A stretch of 25,453 nt of DNA, from positions 1 through 25,453 of the forward strand of contig NIVC01005127.1 of NCBI GenBank assembly GCA_002269645.1. The letters run 5' to 3'. This stretch comes from Macrostomum lignano. Taxonomy: Eukaryota. This document shows, piece after piece, positions 286 to 25,453 of the stretch (positions are counted from its first letter, which is position 1; each line of letters starts with the position of its first letter). A model generated the notes under the pieces. The model searched no databases and was not told the DNA's origin. It saw only the letters and a list, made by a program, of their open reading frames with translations. A program made the position numbers and the translations under genes.

Positions 286-412
286 ATTGAATGATACACC
301 TGAAGCCTGAAGAACCAGAGGGTAGCGTCGCGTGATTGAAGAAGGTCCGAGAATTGCAGGGAAACGGAGTTATAATTCACTCCACAATTGCATTGCAATA
401 GACAGAACAAAC

Positions 413-1265
413 CTTGACTTTGGCGCCATTGTCTAGCACTGGCACGCCGCCTGGCGCTTTTTTAGCTCCGTCCCGTAGAATCTCTTCTCGTGTTTTTATG
501 GCGTACCTTGGCTGCTGCTGCTGCTGACTTCGCTTGTAGCGGGCTGCAGCAGCAAGTGAGGCGGCTTTGGCGGTCGCGTCCGTCACCGTCTCTTCGTTGC
601 CGCGCCTGGGCACCGGCGCCGATTGTTCGGGATAAAATCCCACAGCCTCTTTGCCTTTGCGCTTTGTAGCCTGAACGGGAGTGACAATACCAGCTAGGTC
701 TTTGCCGAGGCCTTTGCCCTGCTTGTAGCCCATCTGCTCCAGCAGCTTCATGCCGATGCCGCGGGTGTGCCGCTCCCAGTGGCCGAAGCCCTGCTCCGCC
801 TGGGCCTGCTGCTGCTGGCGCTGCCGATCATTGGCCGACTGTTTTGGCCGCTGCGGCTGCCTGCGCTCGCCTGGCGCCTGCTCGATCAGCCGCACCTCAG
901 CATCTCCTCGTCGCTCTCATCCGTGATGTCGCCGCCGCCAGCTTCATCAGCCGCTGCTCCTCTTCCTCCTTCATCGTCATCATCATCCATGGCCGACTGG
1001 CCGCCTTTGACGCCGCCGCTAACGAAACTGATGGGACCGCCGGCTCGGTCTCGGCCGGCTCCGCGCGCCGCGGCGACGCCGGTTGCCGAAGCCGCGGCGA
1101 TTGCCGAAGCGTCATCGTCGTCCTCGTCTTCGGAGTCGCTGGCGAACACGCCCGCCCAAGCCTGCTTCTTGGACATTCGGCGCCGCTGGGCCAGCGGTCC
1201 ATGGAATATTTCCAATCGGCCCCCGTCATGTCGAAGCGCTCCATCTCTTCTTCATCGTCATCCAT
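413..1265 (-). CDS. TFIP11: Tuftelin-interacting protein 11 (Ntr1/Spp382 orthologue, G-patch), coding exon 1; gene continues off the left edge; two 1-nt deletions near 1215 and 897
   Basis: Three frames join into [17 protein letters not shown] / [22 protein letters not shown]...PISFVSGG / [51 protein letters not shown]...[10 protein letters not shown]...KVK. This matches recalled TFIP11 motifs ([32 protein letters not shown] G-patch, PKYSYKT, VKVIDMTG). Donor AAG|GTTTGT at 413/412; 853 nt + 2 = 285 codons. Confidence 0.92.
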
Positions 1266-1374
1266 TGTAGGTTGTGCGCTTGGGCGTTAGCGGCTGCTGG
1301 CTGCAATGTTCAGTGAGCGGGTAGGTGAGGGGTCAGCGAGTGCGCTCAAGTTCTCACCTGCGATATCTGAAACT

Positions 1375-1715
1375 CCAGTAATTCTCCAGCCTAGAACTGA
1401 AATATAAATCTACGAAACCAGTAATCTCCAGACTAAAACTGTAATATGAATCTACAAAACCTGTAATTTTGAATCTAAAACTGTAATATGAATCTAGAAA
1501 ACCTGTAATATCGAATATAAAATTAATATGAATCTACTAAAACTGTAATATCGATCTAAAACTGTAATATGATTGAATCTACAAAACCAGTAATCTTCAG
1601 CCTAAAACAGTAATATGAATCTACAAAACCGGTAATATCAAACTCAAAACTGTAATATAAATCTCAAACCAGTAATCTCCAGCCCAAACATGTAATTCTA
1701 GTCTAAAAAAACCAG
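1375..1715. repeat. Degenerate ~21/42-bp tandem repeat between DNAJC17 and TFIP11
   Basis: gtaat core recurs every 20-22 nt (1421, 1441, 1463, 1483 ... 1672, 1692) with a 42-43 bp dimer structure. Confidence 0.85.
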
Positions 1716-1845
1716 TAGTAATAGCATCGAAGACTATTTCTTTACAGTCTTAAAGTCGTTACAGGGTGTAAAATCACTAAGGACTCGATACATCTATCTA
1801 ACGTTACAATCGGCCATATTAAAAAAACTAGAAAAATATTAACAG

Positions 1846-1851
1846 TTTATT
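1846..1851 (-). terminator. Putative polyadenylation signal AATAAA of DNAJC17
   Basis: tttatt on the + strand, about 120 nt past the stop codon at 1971-1973. Confidence 0.6.
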
Positions 1852-1970
1852 ATTTACTTTCTAATCGTAGTAAGAAACTGTATAAATGCAATGTATTTGA
1901 CTTTAAAACAATATACATGCAGCATAAAATCAACTGATCAGAATGCCACAAGTTGAGTGCTATACACATA

Positions 1971-2881
1971 CTACTGATCATCAGTAGGCGCAGCAGATGC
2001 AGCATTATCATCATCCGTACTATTCTTATCGTCGCCAGGATGAGCGCGTTTGCCACGCGAAAACATTTTAATTAGATCGTCGGCTGTCACTTTGCGCAGC
2101 CAATCGCCAGACGGTCGGCCCTGATTGGTTGGCAGCCAATCGCCTGTAGTGGCTGCCGATGCGGCAGGAGGCACGGGAGTCTGCTGGTGCTGCTGCTTCT
2201 GGCCCTGCAGCCACACAGCCGACAGTCCACCTTGACCCGCTGTCAAGGCCTTGACCAACCTGTCCGCGTCGTCGTGTCTACGAAACTCGACAATAGCGAC
2301 ACCACCGCTGCCACCGCGACTGGATTTCTTACTACTAGCCTTGCCCGGCCTGTACAACAGGGTGACCACCTCGCCGAAGCTGGAGCACAGCGACTTCAAA
2401 GAGGCCTCCGACTGACTAGAACAGTCATCCTGATCTCCACGCCAAGTCAATTTTATTGTCGGCAGATTGTCTTTATCCTTGTCGGCAGCCGCCTGTCGGA
2501 GCTCCTGCCTGAGTAGCTCCTGCTCCCTAGCCAGAACGTCGTTCAGCTCCCGCCTAAGCCGCTGCTTCTCCCTCTCTAGGCTGGCTTCATCCTCCTGTCG
2601 GCTCCGGCCGCTTGCAGACGTCGCACTCTCAGCGGCAGCTGCAGCAGCTTCGGCTGCCTCAAGTTGCTCTTTGAATCGGCGCCGGCCTACCCGAGAGCCC
2701 GGGCCCGCTCGGCGGCAGCCTGACGGCCACGGCGCACTTTATCGTAGGCAGCTCGGGCGGCTGCGTCAGTGAGCAGTTGCAGAGCCTCGGACAGTCGACG
2801 GAAACGTTGAGCAGCCAGCGGATCGTCTGGATTTTTGTCCGGATGAACTTTGAGCGCTGCGGTGCGATAGGCTTTGGTGAT
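1971..2881 (-). CDS. DNAJC17: DNAJC17 (J domain, coiled coil, RRM-like domain), coding exon 2; one 1-nt deletion near 2685-2693
   Basis: Acceptor cctgatag|ATC at 2882/2881. Reads [51 protein letters not shown] (HPD motif; human KAYRQKALSCHPDKNPDNP...[15 protein letters not shown]). After a -1 correction: [12 protein letters not shown]...LPTIKLTW...FGEVVTLL...VAIVEF. TAG at 1973-1971. Confidence 0.92.
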
Positions 2882-3038
2882 CTATCAGGGGATGGATTAG
2901 AGAGGTTTAGTTAGCACCTTAGGTAAAAAGCTGGAGTAAAAATGCCTGTATTTTAGTAAACCGATCCCTCGCCATCTAATTAGTTTGCAATGGGCCTTTA
3001 TTTCAACTTTATTATTCACAATTGAATGCACAACTTAC

Positions 3039-3110
3039 CTCCTTTTCTGTAGCATTCTCATCAATGTTAAGTAGTTTATATAAATCTTCATTTTGTATTG
3101 GTGTATCCAT
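3039..3110 (-). CDS. DNAJC17: DNAJC17 coding exon 1 (24 codons)
   Basis: MDTPIQNEDLYKLLNIDENATEKE matches J-domain helix I (human MDLYALLGIEEKAADKE). Donor GAG|GTAAGT at 3039/3038, phase 0, in frame with exon 2 across a 157-nt intron. Confidence 0.9.
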
Positions 3111-3125
3111 GTTGGAGCTGATATC

Positions 3126-3148
3126 CTGAAGAGCTAAATAGCAAATCA
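3126..3148 (-). promoter_or_regulatory. 3' splice acceptor 15 nt upstream of the DNAJC17 ATG (5'-UTR intron or trans-splice acceptor)
   Basis: Minus strand ttgatttgctatttagctcttcag|gatatcagctccaacATG. Confidence 0.5.
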
Positions 3149-5346
3149 ATAAACTATTAACACATGTTCAAATTAGTAAGCTAGCTTGAAATAAAATTTC
3201 TTTTTAATATACATAGATAGAAACATACAGTTAAAAATATACGTATAGAATATTCATTCCTAATATTACTCAGTAATTTAAAGTAAAACAGTTTTATATA
3301 AATAGTTAGTGTGATATGCTATGCAAGTCTAGAGTTAACTATCTATTTGCTTTTACAAAGTATTTTTGTAGTCTAAAGACCAAGACCCTTGCAAACATAG
3401 CTTGCAAAGTTGGTTGCAAAAGATTCAAATACCATTTTTTCTTTTTTATATTTGTTCTTCATGTCTTTATATCTTATATTAGCATTTAGGCCCTGAAATG
3501 TATTCTATGATATTGTTTTTATCCTTCATAACTTGCTTGACTGGCTAAAAACATTTTATTGTATTTGTTGCTGCTATGATTTATATTATTATTTGTGAAA
3601 GTTTTTCTTATGTAAAAATCTGTGCAATTTCATATCTGCAAATATTTCTTAGGAAAAATTTGTCTTATTATATATATTTTCCAAAATATTCTAGTGAAAA
3701 TACCAAAATCAGCAGTAGACAACTTAGATATCAAAGAATATACATATGTAGGGGCCTATAGAATACTAAAAGCCATGGCCTTCTAACTTTAATAATGTAT
3801 AAGACTAAAAGAAATATATATGTAATATATTTAGTAGTAATAGCAAAATACTGCTTAGGCCTATATAAGAATGCTATTAGTACAGAACAAGAACACATCA
3901 ATAAGAAATTAAAAATACTTAGAAGTATTTTATATATTTTTAAATCCAAGGCATATTTATTAGCTATTAGCCTCTTTCTTAGTTTAAAACTTTTTTAACT
4001 AAATTTTTCTTTTTTATCTCCTGCTTCACCCTAATTTTTATTGCCTTTCTAGCCTAAAGTTAACCATATAAATATATATTTTAGTGAATGGGCTAATATA
4101 CAATATTGCTAAACCAATTAGTAAGTTGTTTATATTAATAAGCTTTGGTTAATGAATTTTTCAAAGTTATTTTAGCTATTTTTATTTTTATAAAATAGCT
4201 TATATAGGCTACAATTTTTTTCTAGTGAACTGAAAATAGAAAGCTGTTTTACTAAGTATATATGTCTAAATTATAAATGGCCTATCTAGTTATTTTAGAA
4301 ATTTAGTATCTATGCTAATAACTTAATAGAATTAGTTGAAACTAATAAAATATTGTGATAACTTTTATATCAATATTTTAAAGTTAAATTAATGTGATAT
4401 AAAAACTTGTGATAGCTACCTTTGATAGTAGAAATATAATTTTGTTAAGATAAAGTACTAGCCTTAGGCCTATTGTATGTAAAAATTTTAAATTAATAAA
4501 TTAATAAAAATCATTAAGAAGGGTCTTCTTACATTAAGATTTGAATTCTTTATAAGGCCTAATTAGAATTTTAAAAGCTAAAGTAAAACTCAATATGTAA
4601 TTTATAAGCTTGAAAATTTTTAGAATATATAAAATTCTAAAATTGGTAAACAAAATGACTTTCTACATATATAACATAGAATGATAGATTGGCCTATAAC
4701 AAATAAAATATGGCAAAAAATCATTGACATTTGTCAAAGATAAAATTAGAATAGATGTGTAAGCTTATAGTATGATTAGGTGGGCCAGGCCTATTAAGTT
4801 AGGCCCTAGCTAAGCAACTTAGACTAGGCGGCTAGGCCTATGTTTGTATTTTTGATAGTTTTATATCTTTTTTTCTTATTCTGGAATCTGGATTTAAAGG
4901 CCTATTCCTAGGCTATACAAAGTATTATAGGTCTACTTTAGATGTTTAGAATATTATTGATAATATTTATGACTGCCACTGTCAGCAGTGCCAGCCAAAA
5001 AGAATAGTTAGGCCTACTAGTATTCATTACTATGCCAATGCCATCATTACTATATTACTACATATTACTAGGCCCATGCTATGCCTTCATAGGGGCACCA
5101 TCATTACCACACCCCTACAAGGGGCAGGGGGCAGGTTACTACCCCTCTTGCCTTCCCTTTCCCTTAAATCTGTCCCTAGTAGCCTACTAGATATAGACAC
5201 TATCAATATCAATCGAAAAGGCACACAAACTAAAATGCTAATAAAAATAAAAGGAACAAATAAAATTTATTGTTATCATAGCCCATAGGCCTAGCATACT
5301 AGATCCATGACTGTACTAAACCCATATGGGCTCATGCCTGCCTGCC

Positions 5347-5811
5347 CGTGTAGGCCGGATGTAGGCTATATTATATATACTTGTTAGGTTGTCGATGGTA
5401 AGCTTTTGGAGTGTAATTTTCGATGAACTGTGAAATTTCGATGGATTTCAAATAATTGTCTACATAAAGACATTTGCAATAGAAATAATTCTGTGCGTAA
5501 TTATAGTAAGCAGGCCTAAATTAGAAAATCATAAAAATGCAGAACCGTTGGCGTAGGTGCTAGTATTTTAGTAAGACGTTTGTTAATATAGTAACTTTTA
5601 AATTTATTGAAAAAGAAAGGAAAGCGATTAATGCTTATCGCTTGATAATATTAAATGTCAAACTAGGCTGGCTGAATAAACTGGGTAATCCTACCACAAA
5701 TAAATGCATTAATTACACTTCAAGTTAAAAACTCTAGATAATTTTTAAAATAAGTTTTAGTAATAAAGCTTATGTCGATTCCAGACTATAATATTAGCAA
5801 CATGAAGTACG
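5347..5811. promoter_or_regulatory. CpG-retaining segment inside a CpG desert; candidate bidirectional promoter for DNAJC17 and XPO7
   Basis: Manual count: 13 CpG in 465 bp, versus 2 in 3244-5346 and about 8 in 5812-10300; lies between two divergently transcribed genes. Confidence 0.4.
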
Positions 5812-6459
5812 TCTAGATTTTTGCAAGTTGCAACATTTTCTTTCTGGCATTTTCCCAACCTCACTAAGTTTAGTTGGCTCTCAGTTGGCTGAAAATTGTT
5901 TGTTTTATTCCAGAGCCAAAACACTTAACTTTTAACATTTCCATGTTATTATCACTTTAACTATCAATGTGAGAATCTATCATTTCATTATAGATAGGCC
6001 TAAATTTGCTAAAATTATAATTATATAGGGGCCTAGTATCTAGACGGTTATATTAATAATAGTAATAATAATAATAAAAATTTAATATTGAAATTCAATT
6101 GTTTTATCTTTGCTACTATATAATAAATATTGTTTGTTTAAATAGGCCTATCCAAATAATTATTTGATTTTTTTCTTATTAAAAGCTAAACTTAGGCTAG
6201 GCCTAGGTAAAAAAGTGCTAGGCCTAATCAAATTTTGCTTAAAACAACTTATTCTTAGTAGGCCTATTTATAAGATTCAGCCTAGCAATTCCTAATCTTT
6301 GCTCAAAATTCTTGTTTTTATCTATATCTAAATGATCAAAATAAAAATCAAACATTTTAAACAAATTCTAAACCTTAGCTTTAGTAAGATGCATTATATT
6401 ATATTACATTACAATGACACTAGGTTTGGAAGGTGCTAGCGCATAGGCCTATACAATTA

Positions 6460-7110
6460 TGAAAAAGAAAGACAAGATAGATTGCAGCAGTCTAGGAGGT
6501 CAGTCCAATTGCCTTCAAGTTGGCAACAAGTGTCTTTTAGAGTGTCTGGTTCTGCCCTTAGCTGCACTAAAACCATTTGATCAATGGGTACAGAATGGCT
6601 AGTCTAAATGGGTTGTTGTTGCCATGGGCAAACTACCATAGGCAGTGTCTTAGCAAGGCCTAGCAATGTTGGCAGAGCATGGCACTAAGGGATGGCAATT
6701 TTGATCTCTCTATCAGCTGGGCTATCAGGAAAACAGCCAAGTAGTACAGGCCCAACGCTTTATGTAGCAGGTTGTAGAGCATTGTATCAAGGGCCCGCTC
6801 TCATGTAGTTGTCATTGGGATAGCCTCTATGCCATAGAGAAGGATTGGCTCTATGGTGGCATAGAACAAGTAGATCTTCAGGTTGTCCTATACTTTGGAG
6901 GTAAAGATTGGCCTAAGATGGTGCATGGCATACCAGGCCTAGGTCCTCTTATCTATAATGATCGCCTCTAGGCTTATCACAAGGGTGCCTAGATAGTGGA
7001 AGTTGCTGTACATGATTAAGATGGCCTTGCCATTGAGCAGGGTCAGTGGTGGGGCATTGTTAGTACCCATATGCAGTACCTCTGTCTTGCCTGCATTAGT
7101 TCATGTAAAG
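6460..7110 (-). mobile_element. 5'-truncated, inactivated non-LTR retrotransposon (RTE-like LINE): end of RT domain and C-terminal region
   Basis: One minus-strand frame from 7097 reads NAGKTEVLHMGTNNAPPLTLLNGKAILIMYSNFHYLGTLVIS...*AWYAMHHLRPIFTSKV*DNLKIYLFYATIEPILLYGIEAIPMTTT*ERALD. This carries the N..KTE(V), F.YLG, AW..L..I, KI.LF...VE.ILLYG.E motifs of RTE-type ORF2; 9 in-frame stops. Confidence 0.85.
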
Positions 7111-10100
7111 ATACATTAGGCTATATTTAAAGTTTGTATATATAAGTATATATATAAATTTAATAATTGATATTTAGCTAGGTTTTTTATGTGCACTGCA
7201 AAGTATGCATATTATACCATCTTTGAGTTTTAAAATTGCACTCTAAAACTAACAAAGTGGGTATAGTTTAGGTATCATTTTATAAGTTATTTTCTTTTTA
7301 AGCCTCATTTGTAATGCCTTAGAATAAGATCAAGAAATATGAGACAAGAAGTCAAGGCATATATATACAAGATAAAAAAACAAGACACAAGAAAATATCC
7401 ATAAATATGTTTATATTCCTAATTTTTTTAACTAAGAGAAATTGCATTCACTGACTCAGCCTTATAATTGCACCTTGAAATTGGGTACAAAGTGCAATTT
7501 TATGTCTTATCTCTTATAAAACTATATTTTTAGCTTGGAATTGCTTATTATTCAAATTTAAAACAAAATAAAACCAATGTAACAATGCTATGATTCAGGC
7601 ACAAAAATGGTGCAAATATAGGTACAAATGCCTTTTTGCCTTTGTAAGAGATGATATTTGGATAAACATAATCATTTAAGTTCTATCTTTGTATTTTTAC
7701 TTTTATCTTATTGTTATTGGAGTAAATAGGACCTAGCTGTGGTTGCTACTACAAGTGCATGCTAATTATCTTTTTGACCTTATGCCATTTACCAATCTTG
7801 GGAGTCAGGACTATTTTAATCATTTACTTTAGTACTGGACACTAGGCTTTTATCTTAGCCCAATATCTGCCAGTATTTGTGCTTGACATAGAGATTAGCA
7901 ACTCGGAAGGTGCACTTCTACCAATTTCACCTGAAAGAGACACTAGACAAGCATGGATATCACAATTGACTTCTAGAGCTACATTGCTACTGACACTGAT
8001 AGAGATTGTCCTCTCTTACTACATTTGGTCTAAGTATTGCTTGTTTTCCCCCATGATAATGCAAAGATGGAATGTATATTTAGCCAAAATTTAAAACAAA
8101 AACTTTTAAAATGCCCAATATATAATAATGCATGCAAAAATATCTCATATGACATTTTTAGGGGTTGTAAAGAAGCAATCTAGAGGATAATATTAGCATT
8201 GTGCAAAAATTTTTGCCTGGCATAAAATCAGGTAAAATGTCTAATTATAGCACTGCAATCCAATAAATATAGGCCTAGCAGTATTTTTAAAATGATACAT
8301 TATGGCTGATAACTAAAATACTATATATATAATCACAATAGTTTTGAATTTAAATACAAATTACTTTTTATAACCACCAAAGATGTTTTTTCTTAGCTTT
8401 TAATAAACATATTTACATTGTTTAAATAATTAAGACTTAGATATAAGTTATATACTATACTAAACTTTAGTTATAAACTAGGTTAAGTAATATAGATAAT
8501 ATTATTTACTTAAGACCAAGTTATTCTGCAATAATTTTTATTTAAATAAGAAGATTATATATAAGATAATCAGAAAACTGAAAACTGAAATCAATAATAG
8601 AATTTTTCTCCCCAAGTATAAAATTATATTATATAGGGGTATATATCCATAATACCTTCCAAGCTAGCTAATCTAGCTAGCTAGCAAAAGACCTAGCCAA
8701 GGTAAGTTTCAAAATGCCTATTCAAAAGATATAGAAAAAGTATTTAAATAGATAACAAAGCATTTGGCTTTAATAATATAGTCATTATTATTTTTGACAT
8801 GTACCTAGAAAATTACATTAATTTTAGCTTAGGTTTCTTTCATACATATAGATTAGTCATTTTTTTGGTCAAAAAATAAATCAGGGGGTTATATATATGT
8901 GTTATGTGTAAAAGATTTTAACATGAAAATAAATATAATTGACATATTAGTTATTCTAGACATGTGGAGTCTCAATCAATGTCAAAAAGTTTGTTGGAGT
9001 GTATTGGCAGAGCTACAACTAAAGTTGGTATTGTCAATGCAGTTTAGAATAGAAGCAGCAATTCTATTATCTTAAAACCTGATGCAAAACATTGTCTTTA
9101 CTAAGTAAAAAGCGAACAATGAGGCATCATTCATCAACTGCACTTAAATTTGGCCTTAGTATTGTCTTAGTAATTTTCCATGCAGTTAATATAAATACAA
9201 TGTTTTTCTCCATTGCATTCCATTTTTCCAATGTGCATTTTTCCATTGCACATAGAAAGCAATTTTGTGATAGACTACCAAATGCATATAGTTGCATGTC
9301 AAAGTATACTGACCATTCATCATTATAAATCATTATGCTAAGTTTTATAAACTTTTCAATGATTAGTAAAAGGGTAAGAATATCTTATGAGACAATGGGC
9401 CAAATAATATCATTGCAAGATAAATCACCACATTCTACTATTCTAAAAATCCAGATCTAGGTACCTTTCTAAGAACCTTGATAGTATTTGAGCTTTCTAC
9501 CAAAAGGGATTTGTCAATCTCATAAGGCATTTTATAGGGCATTAAGCAGGTGTAAAAAATAATTCAAATGATTTCTAAGATTAGCATCTTAATTCTTAAT
9601 GATACATTTCTAGCCTTTATCTGTCTAAAAAGTTATTTTTCAATAAAAGTTAAAATTTAATAGTTAAAAGTTGTTCTGTCTATTAAATCTTTTAAAATTT
9701 GAATTTGAATTTAAAATATTGATAGTCTTTTGTTCCTCAAAGGTAAAATTGCATCTAGGGTTAGATTTTAGGTTATAATTTTAGAATTTTTTAATGTTAA
9801 GTCTATATATGCACAATTTCCAGTGCAATTACAATTGACAATATTAACAAATTAAGGACTTTTACTTGTTTTTGATAAGCTACTAAACTAAGTCACATTT
9901 TCAGTCAAAACTTAGTCTTATGGCTAGTGTAATTTTAGAATTTGTGCATTTATAAATAATATAATTTATAAAACTTTATAACACTTTTTTCAGTAAAGTT
10001 GATGCAAATAAGTATTTGAAGTATAAAACGAATTTTAATTATATGTTTGCTTTATGCTTTTATTAAAAACAAAAATAGTTGATTTTTCTATCATTGCTAG

Positions 10101-10322
10101 TTCTTATTATTAATCAGGAGTTTAATTTAATTAGACTATGCAAGTCTTCTAACAAAGAAACTAAGAATTAAGAAAGTTATTGATAACTCATTTAGTAAAC
10201 CTCTGTCCAAAGAAGATAAATAAGCTATAGTTAATAAAACATTTTACAATATTTGATTTACTGTGCAAATTTCAGCTTATTTCAGTTTATCAACCATATT
10301 TAAATTTAGCGCCAATACAAAC

Positions 10323-10820
10323 ATGGAAGTTGAGCAGGTTGAGCTGCTGTGCAAGCAGCTGTATGAGACGCAGGATGCTTCATTGCGCTCAGAGGCTGAG
10401 AAAGCGCTAGTGAACTTGACCAATGATCCATTGTGCATGTCAAAATGTCAACTGCTGTTGGAACGGGCCAATTCTCCCTATTCTCAGCTGGTTGCCAGCA
10501 ACAGTCTCACTAAACTGCTGTCAAAGCCTTCGCTTAGTCTGTCAGTTGAAGAGCGCCTAGAGATGCGCAATTATGTGCTGAGGTACTTAGCCCAGCATTC
10601 TGGCAAGCTAGTTAGCTACGTGCAGCAGAGCTTGGCCCAGCTGTTCTGCCGTCTGACTCGGCTGGGCTGGTTCGACTCGGACAGTAAAGAGGATTGGCCG
10701 TTTCGCAATGTTGTTCAGTTAATTACTAATTTTCTGCAGAGACCGGACTCGCAGCATGTGCTGATTGGAGTGCAGCTGCTTTCACAGTTGGTTGCCGAGA
10801 TGAATACGTTTGCTGATCAG
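10323..10820 (+). CDS. XPO7: Exportin-7 (RanBP16/17 family) coding exon 1
   Basis: [29 protein letters not shown]...KCQLLLERANSPYSQL...RNYVL...LGWFD matches human [24 protein letters not shown]. ATG in aaacATG context; donor CAG|GTGAGC; 166 codons. Confidence 0.95.
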
Positions 10821-10879
10821 GTGAGCATGTTAGTCACTTGGAAGTCATAGGCCTTCCAATGCAGTTACAAAATAGGTTT

Positions 10880-11462
10880 CTGTTAATTAGTGTGCTGGGT
10901 CCAGGTGTTCTAATGAGTTTGCTATGCTAGTTGTGCAAAAATAGTTATTTGCCCTAATTCTTTGCTAGATGTGCTAATTAGTGTGCTAGGTGCTCTAATT
11001 GTTGCATTAGGTGCTTTTATTTGGTGTGCTAGGTGTTCTAATTGGTGTGCTAGGTGTTCTAATTGGTGTGCTAGGTGTTCTAATTGGTGTGCTAGGTGTT
11101 CTAACTGGTGTGCTAGGTGTTCTAACTGGTGTGCTAGGTGTTCTAATTGGTGTGCTAGGTGTTATATTTGGTGTGCTAGGTGTTCTAATTGGTGTGCTAG
11201 GTGCTCTAATTGGTGTCCTAGGTTCTCTAATTGTTGCATTAGGTGCTTTTATTTGGTGTGCTAGGTGTTCTAATTGGTGTGCTAGGGGCTCTAATTGGTG
11301 TGCTAGGTGCTCTAATTGGTGTGCTAGGTGCTCTAATTGGTGTGCTAGGTGTTCTATTTGGTGTGCTAGGTGTTCTAATTGGTGTGCTAGGTGCTCTAAT
11401 TGGTGTGCTAGGTGCTCTAATTGGTGTGCTAGGTTAGGTGCTCTAATTGGTGTGTGCTAGGC
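10880..11462. repeat. 21-bp minisatellite (ctaattggtgtgctaggtgtt) in XPO7 intron 1
   Basis: More than 20 near-identical copies; gives 7-aa repeat ORFs (CARCSNW, GVLGVLI). Confidence 0.97.
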
Positions 11463-11616
11463 TTCTAGCGCAGGGTGTATTAGTTTGTTACGCTTTCAAA
11501 ATATACAATATTCATAAAATGGAAACATCAGGCCTTTATATCGCTTTTTTACTAGCTACTACTACTGTTAGTACTAAGCTTTACCTCGCCATCTGCCTAA
11601 TTAACCTCTCCTGCAG

Positions 11617-12378
11617 GAGTCCAGCCGCTCCCTGAGCATGCACAGGAAAATCGCTTCCTCATTCCGCGACTCTCAGTTATTCGAAATATTCCGACTCGGC
11701 TGCTCTCTGCTACGCGACGCGTCCTCGAATTTGAAATCGCTCAGCAGCTCGGTCGCCGATCCGTCATCAACCGAGCACAATCTGCTAGCGCACACGCTTC
11801 GCCTAGTAAAGAACTGCTTGAACTTTGATTTCATCGGCACAGCTGGCGACGAATCAGCCGACGATTTGAGCACCGTCCAAATACCGACCTCTTGGCGGCC
11901 GGCCTTCTTCGATCAGGACTGCGTACTGCCCGGCCTGTTCTTTGAGCTGTTCTCCGGATTGCCTGCCAGCCTGGCTCCGCTGTCCCTGGCCTGCCTAGTC
12001 CAGGTGGCCTCAATCCGCCGCTCCCTGTTCTCCAATGCCGAACGGGCCGCATTTCTTAATTCGTTGGTTCGCGGAGTTCGCGACATTCTGCGCAATCCTG
12101 TTGGTCTGAACGATCCGTCGTGTTATCACGAATTCTGCCGACTGGTTGCCCGGCTCAAGTCTAATTATCAGCTTGGCGAGTTGGTTCGGATTGAAGCCTA
12201 TGATGAGTTTATTAAACTCATCGCCGATTTTACTGTTCGCAGCTTGCAGCTGTACAATTTTGGATCGAATAGCGTGCACTATCTGCTGTCTCTATGGCAA
12301 CGCATGGTCGCTTCGATACCGTATTTGAAAGTTACCGAGCCGCACTATTTAGAGGCCTATGTGCCAGAGATTGTAACG
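11617..12378 (+). CDS. XPO7: Exportin-7 coding exon 2
   Basis: Acceptor cctgcag|[25 protein letters not shown]...CLNFDFIGT...TVQIPTSWR...[21 protein letters not shown]...[12 protein letters not shown]...YVPEIVT. Donor ACG|GTATGT; 254 codons. Confidence 0.96.
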
Positions 12379-12437
12379 GTATGTTTATTTGTGTTGGTTG
12401 TAATTGCCAAAATTTATTGGTTCTCCAAAGCAGGTCG

Positions 12438-13520
<1,083 letters not shown>

Positions 13521-13643
13521 GCTGAAGTCACGTAGGCTGAAGTGGCTGAAGTACTTTGTCTCTGCTGTCAAACCCAAAGTTGCTTCCCATATCCTAGACC
13601 TAAACACACACAGTTAAGTAATGCCAAATTGCATTCCCAACAG

Positions 13644-14183
13644 GCCTACGTGACCTCCCGAGTGGACTCCGTATCGCTAGTGTTTCGCGAGGGCCTCGAG
13701 CAGCCCCTGGACGATGTGAATTTGGTCAGCCAACAGTTGGAACAATTAGCTACCATTGGTCGTTGCGAATACGAGAAAACTGTTCAACTGCTTGTACAGT
13801 TATTTGACCAATCAGCTTCGGCCTATAGTCAGGTGATGCCGCTGGGCGGTACAGATGTACTTGTGCAAGAGTGCAAACTGGCCTGGCTGACCTATTTTAT
13901 GGGCGCCTGCGTTGGCGGCAGGATATCCTTTAATTCAACCGATGTTCACGACGAATTGGACTCGGAGCTCTGCTGCCGGGTGCTCCAACTGATGCGGCTG
14001 GCCGACCAGCGGCTGCCCCACGCTGCTCACAGGCTGGAGCTGGCGTTTCTCTACTTTCTAGACCAATTTCGCAAGATCTACGTTGGCGACTCGGTGCAGA
14101 AGGCCTGCAAAGTCTATAGAAGAATGGGCGAAGTATTGGGCATAGCAGATGAGAGTGCGATTCTGGCTGTGTTTGTTACTAAG
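13644..14183 (+). CDS. XPO7: Exportin-7 coding exon 3 (ends at a GC donor)
   Basis: Acceptor caacag|GCC. AYVTSRVDSV...LATIGRCEYEKT...LFDQSA...GGRISF...FRKIYVGD...VFVTK. Donor AAG|GCAAGT; 180 codons. Confidence 0.93.
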
Positions 14184-14220
14184 GCAAGTGTTTTGCTATT
14201 GTTCTTCCTAGAAAGGCTAA

Positions 14221-14640
14221 GGGGGGTCACCTGACCCCTTTTATAAAGACAAGTGGTTTAACGATTCTCAAGAATTCCCAGGGGTCAGTGACCCCTTCCA
14301 GAAGTACAAGTATTTCGAAGATTCTCGAGAATTCCAGGGGTCAGTTGACCCCTATTAGAAGTACAAGTGTTTCCAAGATTCCTAAGAATTCCAAGGGGGG
14401 TCAGTTGACCCCTACCAGAAGTACAAGTATTTCAAATATTCCCAAGAATTTCAAGGGGGGGGGGGTCAAGTGACCCCTTAGAATTTCAAGTGGTTTGATG
14501 ATTCCTAAAAAATTCCAGTGGTCACGTGACCACCATAGGAGTTCAAAGAAGGTTTAAAGGGTCTGATGGACCCTCCCTAAGAAATCCGAAGGTCAACTGA
14601 CCCCTCCCCCAACAAGTATAGGGGTCAGGTGTCCCCCTAA
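14221..14640. repeat. Degenerate ~56-65-bp tandem repeat, each unit carrying a GGGGTCA-N1-2-TGACCCC palindrome, XPO7 intron 3
   Basis: Palindromes start at 14223, 14281, 14337, 14397, 14462, 14519, 14590 and 14621. Confidence 0.9.
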
Positions 14641-14773
14641 GAAATACAATACGTGAAATGATCTCCAAATTGGGTCTAGATATCAGACTATCTCGGTGTA
14701 AAATCAAGGGGTCATCCGGCAATAACCAACGGTAAAAGTCCTAACAATTTTTTTTCAATCAACAAACTCTCAG

Positions 14774-15256
14774 GTAATAGCCAATCTAAAATTCTGGAGC
14801 CACCACGAGACCATCATAGGCCGCACATTGGCCCTGCTCAGCGATCTCAGCGCCGGCTATTCCGCAGTGCGCAAACTGGTCAGACTAGAAAGCGTCCAAT
14901 TCGTACTGGCCAATCATTCCGCCGCGCATTTCCCGTTCCTCAGCGGCCAGGAGACCCTGCCGACTAGGCTGAAATTTCGCACCTCATTCTATGCCGCTCT
15001 GGGCCGCCTGCTGATGGTCGATCTGGGCGAAGACGAGGACCGATTCCAGGCGTTTATGCAGCCGCTAACTGACGCATTCTCTAATGTTGGCAATTTGCTC
15101 AATTCAAATCAACTGCAGGAGGCTCAGACTGGCCTTGTTGGCTTGGCTAGAGATCTGCGCGGCATTGCGTTCAGTTTGAATACTAAGACTGCCTATATGA
15201 TGCTGCTGGATTGGTTTTGCCCGGACTATTCACAGCTTATGGTCAAGGCGCTTGAG
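14774..15256 (+). CDS. XPO7: Exportin-7 coding exon 4
   Basis: Acceptor ctctcag|GTA. VIANLKFWS...DLSAGYSAVRKLVRL...ALGRLLMVDLGEDED...LVGLARDLRGIAF...KALE. Donor GAG|GTTTGT; 161 codons. Confidence 0.95.
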
Positions 15257-15276
15257 GTTTGTGGCCGTTTACACAT

Positions 15277-16165
15277 TGCCTCTCTCTCCCTCCCAGCTCA
15301 CTATCTCCCTCTATCCCATTGTCTCCCTCTCCCATCTCACTGTCTCCCTCTATCCCATTGTCTCCCTCTCCCATCTCACTGTCTCCCTCTCCTATCCCAC
15401 TGTCTCCCTCCCACCCTCCCATCTCACTGTCTCCCTCCATCTCATTGTCTCCCTCTCCCATCTCACTGTCTCCCTCTATCTCATTGTCTCCCTCTCCCAT
15501 CTCACTGTCTCCCTCTCTCATCTCACTGTCTCACTCTCTCATCTCACTTTCTCCATCTTCTATCTCAGTGCCTCCCTCTCCTATCCCACTGTCTCCCTCC
15601 CTCCCTCCCATCTCACTGTCTCCCTCTATCTCACTGTCTCCCTCTCCTATCTCACTGTCTCCCTCTCTCATCTCACTGTATCTCTCTCATTTCAATGTCT
15701 CCCACTCCTATCTCTCTGTCTCTCTTTCTCATCTCACTTTCTCCATCTTTTATCTCAGTGTCTCCCTCTCATGTCACTGTCTCTCTCTCCCATCTCACTG
15801 TTTCCCTCTCCCATCTCAATCTCCCATCTCACTGTTTCCCTCTCCCATCTCACTGTCTCTCTCATTTCAATGTCTCCCACTCCTATCTCTCTGTCTCTCT
15901 TTCTCATCTTACTCTCTCCATCTTCTATCTCAGTGTCTCCCTCTCCCATCTCACTGTCTCTCTCATCTCACTCTCCCTCTCCCATCTCACTGTCTCCCTC
16001 TCCTATCTCTCTCATCTCACTGTCTCCCTCTTCCATCTCACTGTCTCCCTCTCCTATCTCTCTCATCTCACTGTCTCCCTCTCCCATCTCACTGTCTCTC
16101 TCATCTCAGTGCCTTCCTCTCCTATCCCACTGTCTCCGTCCCATCTCACCGTCTCCCTCCATTAT
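15277..16165. repeat. 21-bp CT-rich minisatellite (ctccctctcccatctcactgt), XPO7 intron 4
   Basis: About 40 degenerate copies; nearly stop-free in all + frames, giving artefactual 321-506 aa ORFs. Confidence 0.96.
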
Positions 16166-16280
16166 GTGTCTATCGATCCATATCCCGCCTCACACTGTTT
16201 CCTGTTCTTCGATACTACAAGTAGTAAAGCTAGTACTAGAACAAAAATTTAATACCGAACTAAACAACTCCGGATGGCAG

Positions 16281-16903
16281 GTCTGGGGCGCCTCCCCCGA
16301 GGTGACCACCCCGATCCTGAAGCTGTACGCCGAGGTGGCGCAAAACCGGTCCAACCGGCTGCAGTTCGACGTGGCCAGCCCGGACGGTGTCCTCCTGTTC
16401 CGCGAGCTGTCCCGGGTTGTCTGCACCTACGGCGAAGGCCTTCTGGCCAGACAGCCGCCTAAGGAACGAATCTATCATCACAAGTTGAAGGGCATCGCTG
16501 TCTGCTTTACTATATTGAAAGCAAGTCTATCTGGCAACTATGTGAACCTTGGCGTATTCAGTCTGTACCAGGACCAGCATTGGACTCTGCGCTGTCTGTA
16601 TTTGTCCGCCTATTGCTCAGCGTTGAACAGACTGAACTGTTGCAATATCCGAAACTGTCTCAGGCTTATTATCCTCTGCTGGACTGTCTGGCTCAGGACC
16701 ATGTGTACTTCTTGGCCGGCTCCGAGCCCACTGTCTTTCTGTACGTGCTGCAATCCGTTCACGATGGCCTGACTTCTTCCGATACTCTGGTCTGCTCGGC
16801 TTGCTGCGCTGTGCTCGATAGTCTGCTCAGCTTCCTCTTCACCTGTCTGCAACGGCGCGGCAGACTAAGGCCTCGGCAAAGGGAGGCGTGCGATCGAATG
16901 CAG
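16281..16903 (+). CDS. XPO7: Exportin-7 coding exon 5; 1-nt deletion near 16575; ends at a probable GC donor
   Basis: Acceptor ggcag|GTC. VWGASPEVTTPILKL...NRSNRLQFDVASPDGVLLFRE...KLKGIAVCF...LSGNYVNLGVFSLYQD, then after a -1 correction ALDSAL...YPKLSQAYY...QDH...CSACCAVLD...CDRMQ. Donor CAG|GCGAGT. Confidence 0.9.
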
Positions 16904-16939
16904 GCGAGTTGCTGCGATGCTTGGATTTGGAAAAATATG

Positions 16940-17345
16940 AGGAGTTCTGGTCCGCTATCAGTATTTATTGGTTGCCATGGGGACTTCTGGGTTGCTATGG
17001 CGATTTATTGGTTGTCATGGGAAATTCTGGGTTGTTATGGGGATTTATTGATTGTCATGGGAAATTCTGGGTTGCTATGGCGATTTATTTGTTGTCATTG
17101 CTAATTCTGGGTTGCTATGGGGATTTATTGGTTGTCATGAGAAAATTCTGGGTTGTTATGGGGATTTATTGATTGTCATTGGAAATTCTAGGTTGCTATG
17201 AGGATTTATTGGCTGTCATTGCTAATTCTGGGTGGTTATGGGGATTTATTGGTTGTCATGGGGATTTCTAAGTTTCTATGAGGTTTTATGGCTCTATGAG
17301 GATGTTTGTTTTGCTATGGGGATTTGAATCGATTATGGAGTTTAA
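16940..17345. repeat. 40-bp (2 x 20) minisatellite, XPO7 intron 5
   Basis: Blocks gaaattctgg gttgctatgg ggatttattg gttgtcatgg repeat with period 40 and decay toward the 3' end. Confidence 0.93.
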
Positions 17346-17565
17346 GAGTCACTATTCGGATTTATTGGTTAATGTATAGATTTGGAGATTGATGATATGG
17401 AGACTTCTAGGTTGCTATGGGATTAATAATCGCTTTGTATAAATTTTCGTGGATTCGGTTTGGGAACCTTCTATGAACTATTAGGGCTATTATCGAGTTA
17501 TATATAGAGGATTTCTAAATGGTTAATATATTAATAATCGCGCTTGCAATTATCCGCCCACGCAG

Positions 17566-17934
17566 ACCAGTGTCCAGCCCCGCCTGCTGGAGCAGCTGCT
17601 GGTCACCCTGCTCAACATTGTGGTATTCGAAGATTGCCGGCACCAATGGAGCCTGTCCCGGCCGCTGCTGCCGCTCATACTGCTAAATGAGAAATGCTTC
17701 CAAGAGGTGCGCGCCTCCATCATCAGCTCGCAGCAGTGGGGCGGCGGCCAGGCCGGGATGGAGCGGCAATCGGCCGTGTCCGCCTGTTTCGACAAGCTCA
17801 TGGAGGGCGTCGAGCGGAATCTGCTGGTTCGGAATCGGGACAAGTTCACCCAGAATCTGTCGCTGTTCAGGCGGGACATTGGCGACGCGTTGAAAGCCGC
17901 CCCGGCTGTTGACCTTGGCAACGAGATGTCCTGA
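17566..17934 (+). CDS. XPO7: Exportin-7 coding exon 6 (terminal)
   Basis: Acceptor cacgcag|[45 protein letters not shown]...[30 protein letters not shown]...NEMS*. The joined protein is about 1091 aa, similar to human XPO7. Confidence 0.95.
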
Positions 17935-20475: not shown

Positions 20476-21184
20476 GACAGGACCAGCTTACACAGATCAT
20501 CGAAGACAGGAACAGCTGACATATCATAGGGAGACAGGAACAGCTGACATATCATAGGAGACAGGATCAGCTGACAGATCATAGGAGACAGGAACAGCTG
20601 ACATCGTAGGAGACAGGACCAGCGCACATATCATAGGAGACAGGACCAGCGCACATATCATAGGAGACAGGACCAGCGCACATATCATAGGAGACAGGAA
20701 CAGCTGACATATCATAGGGAGACAGAAACAGCTGACAGATCATAGGGAGACAGGAACAGCTGACAGATCATAGGAGACAGGAACAGCTGACATATCATAG
20801 GGAGACAGAAACAGCTGACAGATCATAGGGAGACAGGAACAGCTGACAGATCATAGGAGACAGGAACAGCTGACAGATCATAGGAGACAGGAACAGCTGA
20901 CAGATCATAGGAGACAGGAACAGCTGACAGATCATAGGAGACAGGAACAGCTGACAGATCATAGGAGACAGGAACAGCTGACAGATCATAGGAGACAGGA
21001 ACAGCTGACAGATCATAGGAGACAGGAACAGCTGACAGATCATAGGAGACAGGAACAGCTGACAGATCATAGGAGACAGGAACAGCTGACAGATCATAGG
21101 AGACAGGAACAGCTGACAGATCATAGGAGACAGGAACAGCTGACAGATCATAGGAGACAGGAACAGCTGACAGATCATAGGGAG
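20476..21184. repeat. 27-bp minisatellite (ggagacaggaacagctgacagatcata) between XPO7 and the kinesin
   Basis: About 25 copies; gives a 9-aa repeat ORF (MICQLFLSP) on the minus strand. Confidence 0.97.
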
Positions 21185-22255
21185 AAGGAAGACGGGAATT
21201 TTTTATGTTTTAAGGATTGTCTCTCAATTTAGTCAGAAAAAAGGTGCAAGCAAATAGCTTTACACCACTTTCTCTTCACAATTGCGAGTTAAAGATGTCT
21301 GTCTCATATAAACACGAGCGTATATCTATATATATATCTATATCTCGTATGTCTAATTGAAATCAGACATTATTTACAAACCTAAATTAATAATCTCCCA
21401 ACAGGGAATATTGTATCTGCATGGCAACACCATTCTGTCTAGACCATACAAAATATGCAATGAAGGGTGACGATTTGTACTCGTATTTATAGTTTGCAGA
21501 AATATGGGAAATTTGGCAACCAGTTCCCCGACATTTCTATCCAATTTAATTGGCCTTTCTGAATGCTCCTCCCTGTGCGCTGTTTAAAGCCTGCTGGCTA
21601 GCTGCTGGAAACTCTGTACTCATCCTGTGCTCTCTAAATTCTCTTCCCAGAAGCAGCTGCAGTGCTCCAGAAAAGCTCCTAGAGACCGTGTCGCCCAACC
21701 CCTCCCAAGCTTGTACTGCCGACCGGATCGCTCACCCCATGCCTCCAGCTCCTTAGCATTGCATTCTCCCTCATCTCCCAGCCTCTCCCCTAGCATTGGT
21801 GCAGAGGTTATCTCCCCGCCCCACACACGCACGCCTGTGCACGGGACACACTGCATGGCATCCACTTTCAAAGTGCTGGCGCCGCCGCCAGCCTCTCGCG
21901 CCGCTGAAACCTCCCGACAGCTCAGCCCCATCGATTTTCCTGCCCCTTCGGCTTTCTCTCTCTCTTGGCTGCACTTCCCCTCCCAGCCTCCCCCAGACCG
22001 TCCTATCTGCATGCTAGATGAAGCGCTTAGGACTGGCCCTATCAGTGCCGCTGGAGCCCGCAGACGTCCCACGTAGTAGCGAAGCCTGCAGGACAGACAG
22101 TCGGACAAAGCGAACGGCCCTGGTGGTGTGTGTGACACGTGTCTGCATGCCCGCCTGCCGCTGCTGCTGCCTCTGCAGCACAAGCCAGTCTGTTGGTCTA
22201 TTTTCTTCTATTAGTATTTTAATAACAGACTTATAGACTCGGAACTCCTAGGGTC

Positions 22256-22994: not shown

Positions 22995-23812
22995 AGGAAT
23001 CTTAATAAACAGTTGGGGAATTTCAATAAATATTTTGGAGGATCTCAATAAACAGTTTAGGGAATCTCAATAAACATTTGTGGAATCTCAGTAAAACATT
23101 TGGAATCTCAGTAAACAGTTTGTGAATCTCAATAAACATTTTGGGGAATCACAATAAATAGTTTGGGGAATCTCAATAAACGGTTTGGGAATCTCAACAG
23201 ACAACTTGGGGAAATCTCAATGAAACAAGTTGGATCTCAATAAAAGATTTGGGAACTCAATAAACAATTTGGGGAATCTCAATAAACAGTTTGGGAATCT
23301 CAATAACAGTTTGGGGAATCTAAACAGTCTGAGGAAGCTCAATAAACAATTTGGATCTCAATAAAACAGTTTGGGAAACTCGCAAACAGTTTGGGAATCT
23401 CAATAAACAGTTTGGGGAATCTCAATAAACAATTTGGGAATCTCAATAAACAGTTTGGGGAATCTCATAAACATTTGGAGATATCTCATAAACAATTTGG
23501 GAACTCAATAAACAGTTTAGGGAATTCTCAATAAACAATTTGGAATCTCAATAAACATTTTGGGGAATCTTAATAAACAATTTGGGGATCTCAATAAACA
23601 GTTTGGGGAATCTCAATAATCAGTTTGGGGAATCTCAATGAGCAATTTGAGGAATCTCAATGAGCTTGAGGAATCTCAATGAGTAATTTGAGGAATCTCA
23701 ACAGACAGTTTGGGGAATCTCAATAAACATTGTAGCGAATCTCAATAGACAGTTTGGGGAATCTCAACAGACAGTTTGGGGAATCTCAACAGACAGTTTG
23801 GGGAATCTCATC
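22995..23812. repeat. ~22-bp minisatellite (ggggaatctcaataaacagttt), kinesin intron 1
   Basis: About 35 indel-rich copies running to within ~13 nt of the acceptor at 23825. Confidence 0.96.
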
Positions 23813-23825
23813 TCAACTCCCTCAG

Positions 23826-24326
23826 ACATCACGAACCCGAAAGCCGGCCCAAAGAGCAGGCGGTCAAGAGCTTCCAGTTCGAGCTACTGGTCGCACCAGC
23901 CCGGCGGCCCAGGATTCGCCAGCCAGCGCCGCGTCTACGAAGACATCGGCGTGGAAACGCTGGAGCACGCGTTCGAAGGCTACAATGTGTGCATCTTCGC
24001 CTACGGGCAGACAGGCGCGGGCAAGAGCTACACGATGATGGGCCGGCCCTCGGAGCCTGAGCAGGCCGGCATCATCCCGCAGCTGTGCGAGAATCTGTTC
24101 TGCCGGCTGGGCCAGCTGACCGAGGCCGGGGCCAGCAGCATCCTTGAAGTGTCCTACATGGAGATCTACTGCGAGCGGTTCGCGACCTGCTCAATCCGAA
24201 GAACAAGGCCAACCTGCGGGTTCGCGAGCACCCGCTGCTGGGGCCCTACGTTGAGGATCTGTCCAAGTGCGCTGTGACCAGCTTTGGCGACATCAACGAT
24301 TTGATTGATGCCGGAAATAAGTCCAG
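23826..24326 (+). CDS. unc-104: Kinesin-3 (KIF1A/unc-104-like) coding exon 2, motor domain with P-loop; lesions near 23849, 23881 and 24178; gene continues off the right edge
   Basis: Acceptor ccctcag|AC. YITNPK...SYWSH...[26 protein letters not shown]...GIIPQLCE...[11 protein letters not shown], then after a -1 correction [49 protein letters not shown]. Donor AG|GTGATT. Confidence 0.93.
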
Positions 24327-24429: not shown

Positions 24430-25453
24430 AGACCGATATGGGAGAATTTTCCTAGCACTCTTAAAATCGAAAATCGATATTTTAAAGAAATTCTCCTAGC
24501 ACTATGAAAATCGATACCGGAGGGGAATTCTCCTAGCACTATGAAAATCGATATCGGAGGGGAATTCTCCTAGCACTATGAAAATCGATACCGGAGGGGA
24601 ATTCTCCTAGCACTCTGAAAATCGATACCGGAGGGGAATTCTCCTAGCACTATGAAAATCGATACCGGAGGGGAATTCTCCTAGCACTATGAAAATCGAT
24701 ATCGGAGGGGAATTCTCCTAGCACTCTGAAAATCGATACCGGAGGGGAATTCTCCTAGCACTCTGAAAATCGATACCGGAGGGGAATTCTCCTAGCACTA
24801 TGAAAATCGATACCGGAGGGGAATTCTCCTAGCACTATGAAAATTGATACCGGAGGGGAATTCTCCTAGCACTATGAAAATCGATATCGGAGGGAATTCT
24901 CCTAGCACTATGAAAATCGATACCGGAGGGGAATTCTCCTAGCACTATGAAAATCGATGTCGAAAGGGAATTCTCCTAGCACTCTGAAAATCTATGTCGA
25001 AGGGGAATTCTCCTAGCACTCTGAAAATCGATACGGAGGGGAATTCTCCTAGCACTATGAAAATCGATACCGGAAGGGAATTCTCCTAGCACTCTGAAAA
25101 TCGATACCGGAGGGAATTCTCCTAGCACTATGAAAATCGATACCGAGGGGAATTCTCCTAGCACTATGAAAATCGATACCGGAGGGGAATTCTCCTAGCA
25201 CTCTGAAAATCGATGTTGGAGGGGAATTCTCCTAGCACTCTGAAAATCGATGTTGGAGGGGAATTCTCCTAGCACTATGAAAATCGATGTTGGAGGGGAA
25301 TTCTCCTAGCACTCTGAAAATCGATGTTGGAGGGGAATTCTCCTAGCACTATGAAAATCCATGTTGGAGGGGAATTCTCCTAGCATTCTGAAAATCGATG
25401 TTGGAGGGGAATTCTCCTAGCACTATGAAAATCGATGTTGGAGGGGAATTAAG
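24430..25453. repeat. 37-bp minisatellite (ggggaattctcctagcactatgaaaatcgataccgga), kinesin intron 2, running off the right edge
   Basis: ctcctagc at 24493 and 24530 (37-bp period); about 26 copies with no spacers. Confidence 0.97.

Follow-up and report, generated by a model that had tools for sequence, protein, structure and literature searches.

The window, that is, the whole stretch of DNA analysed here, is 25,453 nucleotides long. It was found that the relic of a LINE retrotransposon lies inside an AT-rich, CpG-depleted intergenic block. The features are listed below.

12-276, 1375-1696, 10963-11434, 14219-14460 and 15283-16159: minisatellites
16963-17325, 20476-21190, 22996-23810 and 24489-25450: further minisatellites
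377-3130, minus strand: TFIP11-like gene and DnaJ/RRM-type gene
3000-10200, no strand: AT-rich (27% GC), CpG-depleted (observed/expected ratio, o/e, 0.04-0.26) intergenic block with the LINE, defined by composition
3856-6451, no strand: cluster of 11 copies of the octamer TAGGCCTA, the last one within the LINE 3′ end
5330-5800, no strand: CpG-retaining patch of 470 bp in the CpG-free block (12 CpG, o/e 1.05, 32% GC)
6444-7097, minus strand: relic of a 5′-truncated non-LTR (LINE) retrotransposon (46% GC, 3 CpG; tblastn and collinear protein alignment)
6483-7097, minus strand: reading frame of 205 codons, beginning at 7097, with nine stops (six TAG, two TAA, one TGA)
6941, 6890, 6662, 6635, 6569 and 6494, minus strand: TAG stops of this frame
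6560 and 6539, minus strand: TAA stops of this frame
6803, minus strand: TGA stop of this frame
7011-7013, minus strand: extra codon (ATG), the sole indel relative to all relatives, missing from six relatives and from the gene model P0121
6519-6834, plus strand: stretch whose antisense translation survives as "exons" of the gene models P0121 and P0168 (alignments to both)
10263-17934, plus strand: GC-rich exons of the exportin-7 gene, by homology
23798-24240: kinesin-3 motor

The AT-rich block is flanked by the DnaJ/RRM-type gene on the minus strand and the exportin-7 gene on the plus strand. By eye, the DnaJ-type gene seems to have its first coding exon at 3030-3130 on the minus strand; it reads M D T P I Q N E D L Y K L L N I D E N A T E K E and is then followed by GT. 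This exon abuts the block, which would therefore separate two genes of divergent orientation. The exons on either side of the block have a CpG o/e of 0.56-1.25. Over the exons at 377-2450, 10263-17934 and 23798-24240, which belong to broadly expressed genes, the ratio is about 0.8-1.25, with one exon at 0.56, and no gene-body-methylation footprint was seen in the TFIP11-like, DnaJ/RRM-type, exportin-7 or kinesin-3 exons. Compared with the LINE itself, its non-repeat flanks are richer in AT and poorer in CpG. Around the patch at 5330-5800, the o/e of the block is otherwise 0.04-0.07; the patch may be a younger insertion or an island free of methylation. No near-identical proteins to the window exons were present in the database searched. 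Against XPO7 of arthropods and vertebrates, an exportin-7 exon shows 58-66% identity, compared with 34% for a fungal protein, and gene models of Macrostomum lignano contain the LINE family; both observations agree with the first-pass annotation, which had taken the DNA to be from an animal genome. Rfam and tRNA scans of the whole window found nothing.

In the interval 6481-7097 (A153, C124, G164, T176; 46.7% GC; three CpGs, o/e 0.09), the first-pass annotation had recognised a LINE fragment of about 205 codons in a single frame with nine stops and only three CpGs. These counts were reproduced; there is no frameshift, and one extra codon is present at 7011-7013. The number of stops alone is not telling, since 7-20 stops occur in the other five frames of this interval. 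The frame is real rather than a product of chance, because its translation can be aligned over the full length with six intact reverse transcriptase (RT) proteins of the non-LTR type. All six are collinear with all 205 codons in the protein alignment, without a frameshift, and this collinear alignment (about 200 amino acids) to intact RVT_1 proteins bears out the LINE assignment. In tblastn, the intact relatives P0122, P0126 and P0130 span 7097 to 6498 or 6444, with E values down to 2e-42. The homology begins abruptly at 7097 (about residue 276 of 495 in the relative) and reaches the C-terminus near 6444, and the sequence from 7098 onward is AT-rich and non-homologous. Judging from the alignments, the copy is 5′-truncated and has retained its 3′ end. 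What is left of it is the final ~36 residues of the RT domain and a C-terminal extension. RVT_1 is the only Pfam domain in the intact relatives, and the RTE-like clade named in the first-pass annotation is a putative label; a Pfam search of the stop-masked fragment, which lies mostly C-terminal to RVT_1, gave no match, nor did a search of the raw stop-masked fragment against a set of 5.8 billion proteins. A stop-free 52-residue peptide of the LINE, used as the query, showed 73% identity to a stretch of P0121 and 54% to P0122, and a profile search with a four-row alignment of real matches led to about 45 relatives of the family. No second LINE copy was found within the window. A BLAST search in a purine/pyrimidine alphabet for further hypermutated copies in the AT-rich block gave hundreds of spurious matches and was uninformative.

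The six intact RVT_1-bearing relatives are metagenome contigs (L001-L006). The relatives of the fragment have 60-64% GC and a CpG o/e of about 0.85. Over L001-L006 and the further intact family loci L007-L086, GC ranges from 54 to 64% (whole contigs and aligned coding parts); these loci are short contigs from ENA, JGI and Logan assemblies, with one from a TARA metagenome, and some distant ones are contigs titled marine metagenome. A metagenome scan for nearer relatives yielded only copies of at most 48% identity. P0121 is the UniParc entry UPI0007A29404; it has long identical stretches in common with P0168, which is named as a Macrostomum lignano protein in UniRef. Both are chimeric M. lignano gene models reading the LINE family in sense and antisense frames. 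In these chimeras, an alpha/beta-hydrolase N-terminus is fused to antisense and sense LINE pieces, and P0121 additionally contains LTR-retroelement gag/protease-like parts. They are likely to be annotation artefacts of a repeat-rich assembly. The two models read 6628-6744 in two overlapping frames, which fixes near-ancestral DNA there. Using three alignments and no reference to the fragment, 362 of the 532 covered nucleotides of the M. lignano copy could be determined. The ancestor used below is a proxy composed of these 362 sites of protein-constrained M. lignano DNA and 124 sites from the consensus of the distant relatives (486 in total). The motifs that had been proposed by reverting T to C and A to G match the relatives, which have LRRRRQ, [LF]RRGQGR..TL and K[IVM]RLFRA[AT]VE. 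At the KIYLFY site, the reversion fits the relatives but the proposed CG>TA change is not needed, since the M. lignano copy, which is the nearest relative, has KIHLFH and a single CA>TA step suffices.

The differences between the M. lignano copy and the fragment at the 362 sites were as follows.

C>T: 33-34
G>A: 33-34
T>C: 0
A>G: 0
Transversions: 10

In total, 67 G:C>A:T transitions, no A:T>G:C transition and 10 transversions were counted, and none of the 133 A/T sites of the comparison had undergone an AT>GC transition. The proposal of inactivation by directional C>T and G>A change without frameshifts therefore holds. About 29-30% of the G/C of the copy was lost to one-way change. Its ordinary divergence is low, with transversions at about 3% and a single indel of 3 bp, and by this clock the copy is young. 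Because ordinary mutation was low while 29% of the G/C sites flipped, the frame is intact and yet filled with stops. Could these differences be an artefact of the inference, the fragment coming from a subfamily or lineage that was already AT-richer before insertion? The ancestor is a proxy, which leaves some room for this, but it is very unlikely. Divergence between subfamilies should run both ways, and neither T>C nor A>G was seen. When a difference was called polarisable if at least five of the six distant relatives agreed, the fragment carried the derived state at 35 of 40 differences, the relatives siding with M. lignano. The nine stops show that the changes arose in a non-functional copy, and the identity of the fragment to the M. 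lignano copy is 97% if GC>AT transitions are ignored (purine/pyrimidine). Going by this identity, the window most likely comes from M. lignano or a close relative.

The variants inside eight intronic minisatellite arrays of the same window, obtained by re-synchronised slicing and MAFFT, served as the control. They comprise 39 GC>AT transitions, 27 AT>GC transitions, 56 transversions and 38 indels, and no CpA preference was seen among them. The LINE differs from this control in direction (p=2e-10) and in the ratio of transitions to transversions (6.7 versus 1.2, p=1e-6). Scaled to the 10 transversions, about 11 GC>AT transitions are expected in the LINE, whereas 67 are seen. Outside CpG, C>T change is about 5-6 times the transversion-based prediction, and at CpC and CpT together it is about 4-fold above the transversion clock.

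The C>T changes on the 486-site ancestor (both strands) were sorted by dinucleotide context.

CpG: 32 of 60 (0.53)
CpA: 16 of 43 (0.37)
CpC: 11 of 84 (0.13)
CpT: 7 of 42 (0.17)

The change extends beyond CpG and favours CpA, as the first-pass annotation had claimed (16/43 at CpA versus 18/126 at CpC and CpT; Fisher p=0.002, or p=0.03 with the M. lignano sites alone). The table gave neither transitions confined to CpG nor CpA>TpA at the background rate. The CpA rate is about 2.5-3 times that of CpC and CpT, an excess that consists of 16 events at one locus. The inferred ancestral codons at the LINE stops are CAG, CGG, CGA, CAN (CAA/CAG) or NGG. Since TAG or TAA made by a transition must derive from CAG, CAA or TGG, the argument from CpA>TpA at stops is partly tautological, and the context table is the real test. 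Among trinucleotides, CAG (7/14) and CAC (3/6) are the most mutated of the non-CpG class, while GCC is mutated at 1 of 30. Of 16 fully determined CpGs, 15 were lost, becoming CA (seven), TG (four), TA (two) or other dinucleotides (two).

It is unlikely that ordinary neutral decay, in which CpG methylation decay and AT-biased mutation acted over a long time in a low-recombination region and no non-CpG process took part, produced this record. CpG loss with a matching TpG/CpA gain is classical, the surrounding block has 27% GC, TA-type stops necessarily come from CA or TG, and a 2.5-3-fold CpA effect at a single locus is modest. On the other hand, such decay does not readily give zero AT>GC changes at 133 A/T sites against 67 GC>AT, a transition:transversion ratio of 6.7 where the minisatellites of the window have 1.2, a loss of 29% of the G/C beside about 3% transversions and one in-frame indel, or a non-CpG C>T rate about 5-6 times that predicted from transversions.

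The two strands were affected alike. At CpA, 8 of 22 sites are changed on one strand and 8 of 21 on the other, and the context hierarchy is the same on both. The mutated fraction is 24-34% in each fifth of the element, so that there is no clustering, and the succession of C>T and G>A changes, put to a runs test, showed no strand-coordinated tracts (z about -0.9). In the trinucleotide table, LINE C>T change was not elevated in the TC context, and no TC/CC preference was found. These data bear on AID/APOBEC-like editing of single-stranded DNA or RNA during retrotransposition, by which the copy would have been born hypermutated. APOBEC hypermutation of retroelements is established in vertebrates (PMC4866542), and the LINE resembles APOBEC3-edited copies in its excess of G>A/C>T and in its premature stops (PMC4866542). 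Editing of this kind would also account for many transitions with little other divergence. However, the editing of cDNA would be strand-specific, while on the sense strand of the LINE C>T (33) and G>A (34) are about equally frequent and follow one context hierarchy. G>A changes clustered on one strand in a deaminase context (TC/CC, or GA/GG on the complementary strand) were not found, and the runs test was not significant. The saturation of CpG change and the CpG-free flanks, which were affected too, show a regional process acting after integration. Birth of the copy in a hypermutated state is thus extremely improbable.

The pattern had also been called RIP-like, after the repeat-induced point mutation of Neurospora and other fungi, of which CpG/TCG-targeted variants exist in basidiomycetes (PMC3318451). 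As in fungal RIP, the LINE shows one-way C>T and G>A change on both strands, stops without frameshifts, and CpA hit more often than CpC or CpT; the transitions are C>T and G>A only (67 versus 0 in reverse), equally on the two strands. The thresholds for RIP that go back to Margolin 1998 and RIPCAL are reportedly a TpA/ApT of at least 0.89 and a (CpA+TpG)/(ApC+GpT) of at most 1.03. In the LINE interval, TpA/ApT is 0.98, (CpA+TpG)/(ApC+GpT) is 1.70, and the composite index is -0.73; the neighbouring blocks have composite indices of -0.06 and -0.33. A fungal-type signature, with CpA preferred, TpA raised and CpA/TpG lowered, was thus not found in the interval by the substrate index (1.70) or the composite index (-0.73). 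TpA is not enriched (o/e 1.06, about three over expectation). Rather, about 30 CpGs are missing, and TpG and CpA together exceed expectation by about 26, which nearly makes up for the loss. The LINE is unlike a RIP target in further respects, since CpA is changed less often than CpG, the family copies in two M. lignano gene models are spared, and decay has gone further in the flanks than in the repeat. The M. lignano copies, as seen through P0121 and P0168, have open antisense frames and are essentially unmutated; the mutated state was not found in them. The RIP-like part of the first-pass annotation is therefore not sustained, on the indices of the LINE (-0.73) and its neighbouring blocks (-0.06 and -0.33) as well as on the CpG preference, the unmutated copies of the two M. 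lignano models and the decayed flanks. Animals are not known to possess the fungal RIP machinery.

The same observations weigh on a wider proposal, namely that a dedicated genome-defence system acting on double-stranded DNA operates in an animal, be it a RIP-like one, triggered by homology and using a DNMT-like deaminating enzyme, or another cytosine deaminase aimed at transposable elements. The one-way C>T change on both strands, the raised CpA, the many stops without frameshifts, and a burst that was fast relative to background divergence would all fit. Still, such a system appears quite unlikely. Besides the indices (1.70 and -0.73), the order of CpG and CpA, the lack of TpA enrichment, the intact family copies in M. 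lignano models and the greater decay of the unique flanks, there are no strand-coordinated runs, no second trigger copy lies within the window, and C>T change is not raised in TC, the usual context of enzymes of the DddA or APOBEC type.

The record may best be compared with the methylation-driven CpG decay of silenced transposons, as in vertebrate Alu and L1 (PMC7431005). Regional CpG depletion matched by a gain of TpG/CpA, the pattern by which 5mC decay is recognised, is present at the LINE block. As in Alu/L1-type decay, CpG is almost gone from the LINE (15 of 16), and the TpG/CpA excess balances the deficit. The change is likewise strand-symmetric, gradual, unclustered and regional, and the neighbouring exons are spared. 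The LINE departs from that type in its additional non-CpG C>T change (37% at CpA, about 15% at CpC/CpT) and in the absence of reverse transitions. The host differs too, being a flatworm-type invertebrate in which the gene bodies of this window are free of CpG depletion. Methylation of transposons or intergenic DNA is not known to have been described in flatworm-type invertebrates.

In its hierarchy (CG far above CA, CA above CT, and CT about equal to CC, with CAG 7/14 and CAC 3/6 at the top), the LINE resembles DNMT3-type non-CpG methylation. In the neurons and ES cells of vertebrates, non-CpG (CpA) methylation serves as an epigenetic mark. It is not known as a germline mutational signature in the transposable elements of invertebrates. 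Focal CpG loss is the usual footprint of targeted germline methylation. It is somewhat more probable than all other origins taken together that the copy underwent regional deamination of cytosines in double-stranded DNA after its insertion, and the deaminated base was most likely 5mC, at CpG and to a lesser degree at CpA. How large the changes are, which way they run, their contexts, their symmetry and the loss of CpG across the region are observed; methylation would be their cause, and non-CpG methylation, which the first-pass annotation had offered as its alternative, would be the best reading. The mechanism of deamination is put forward from a single locus.

The following course of events can be proposed. 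A GC-rich (about 60-64% GC), CpG-rich LINE of a family found in M. lignano would have been inserted, 5′-truncated, into the intergenic block. After insertion, C>T change in one direction would have taken place on both strands. Nearly all CpGs would have turned into TpG/CpA, some going on to TpA, and about 37% of the CpA and about 15% of the CpC/CpT cytosines would have changed besides. The process would have been regional and bound to chromatin, with 5mC most likely set by enzymes of the DNMT1/DNMT3 type at CpG and, to a lesser degree, at CpA. A regional, chromatin-bound process is suggested because the contexts form a hierarchy (CpG far above CpA, CpA above CpT and CpC), the two strands are alike, the changes are not clustered, and a CpG-free block of 7 kb stands beside unaffected exons.

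Classical animal methylation does not predict the raised CpC and CpT. Since these contexts are also about 4-fold raised, a general deamination-prone state could contribute. If the 27% GC of the flanks were the equilibrium of the same process, the LINE should contain about 10-17 AT>GC changes, and it has none; the flanks and the LINE may therefore differ in history.

DNMT1 and DNMT3 are both retained in Macrostomum lignano, where 5mC is present at a low level; the pattern of methylation is undescribed for this species and for free-living flatworms (PMC11292947, PMC9246332). With normal-CpG housekeeping exons beside a CpG-free intergenic block, the footprint at this locus is the opposite of a gene-body mark. 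Most methylating invertebrates show a gene-body methylation footprint, their 5mC being usually on gene bodies and not on intergenic transposable elements. It is conceivable, though rather doubtful, that this macrostomid marks intergenic DNA bearing transposable elements, and not gene bodies, with dense methylation that reaches CpA (CAG/CAC), or uses another cytosine-deaminating activity directed at double-stranded DNA, and that fast one-way C>T change kills its retrotransposons, a RIP-like outcome of independent origin. If this were general, the mutational inactivation of transposable elements through cytosine modification would operate in a spiralian, and the spectrum (CpG far above CpA, CpA above CpY, GCC refractory) would be a fingerprint of the enzyme involved. 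If it concerns this locus only, the copy is a dead LINE of the ordinary kind in which the traces of deamination are unusually clean. As a variant of methylation-type transposon decay at one locus, it is worth a genome-wide check.

Some other repeats of the window may be mentioned. Minisatellites with a period of 21-57 bp and up to 43 units occur in almost every intron and spacer, and several of them yield long spurious ORFs in the program-made ORF list. In an intron of the exportin-7 gene, about 268 AGAT units make up a microsatellite of 1.08 kb (12440-13520), with a GC skew near 1. The palindrome TAGGCCTA has 12 copies, versus 0.6 expected; 11 are in the left half of the AT-rich block and one is at 8270. 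It was considered whether these islands are mutational survivors, GCC being refractory, but a simulation of the LINE-derived model gave at least 15-fold too few sites. In 3000-10200, AGGCCT is followed by A in 18 of 18 cases and preceded by T in 12 of 18, with no wider consensus. The G/C runs of the AT-rich block are mostly of the G..C form, GGCC occurring 24 times versus two for GGGG and three for CCCC.
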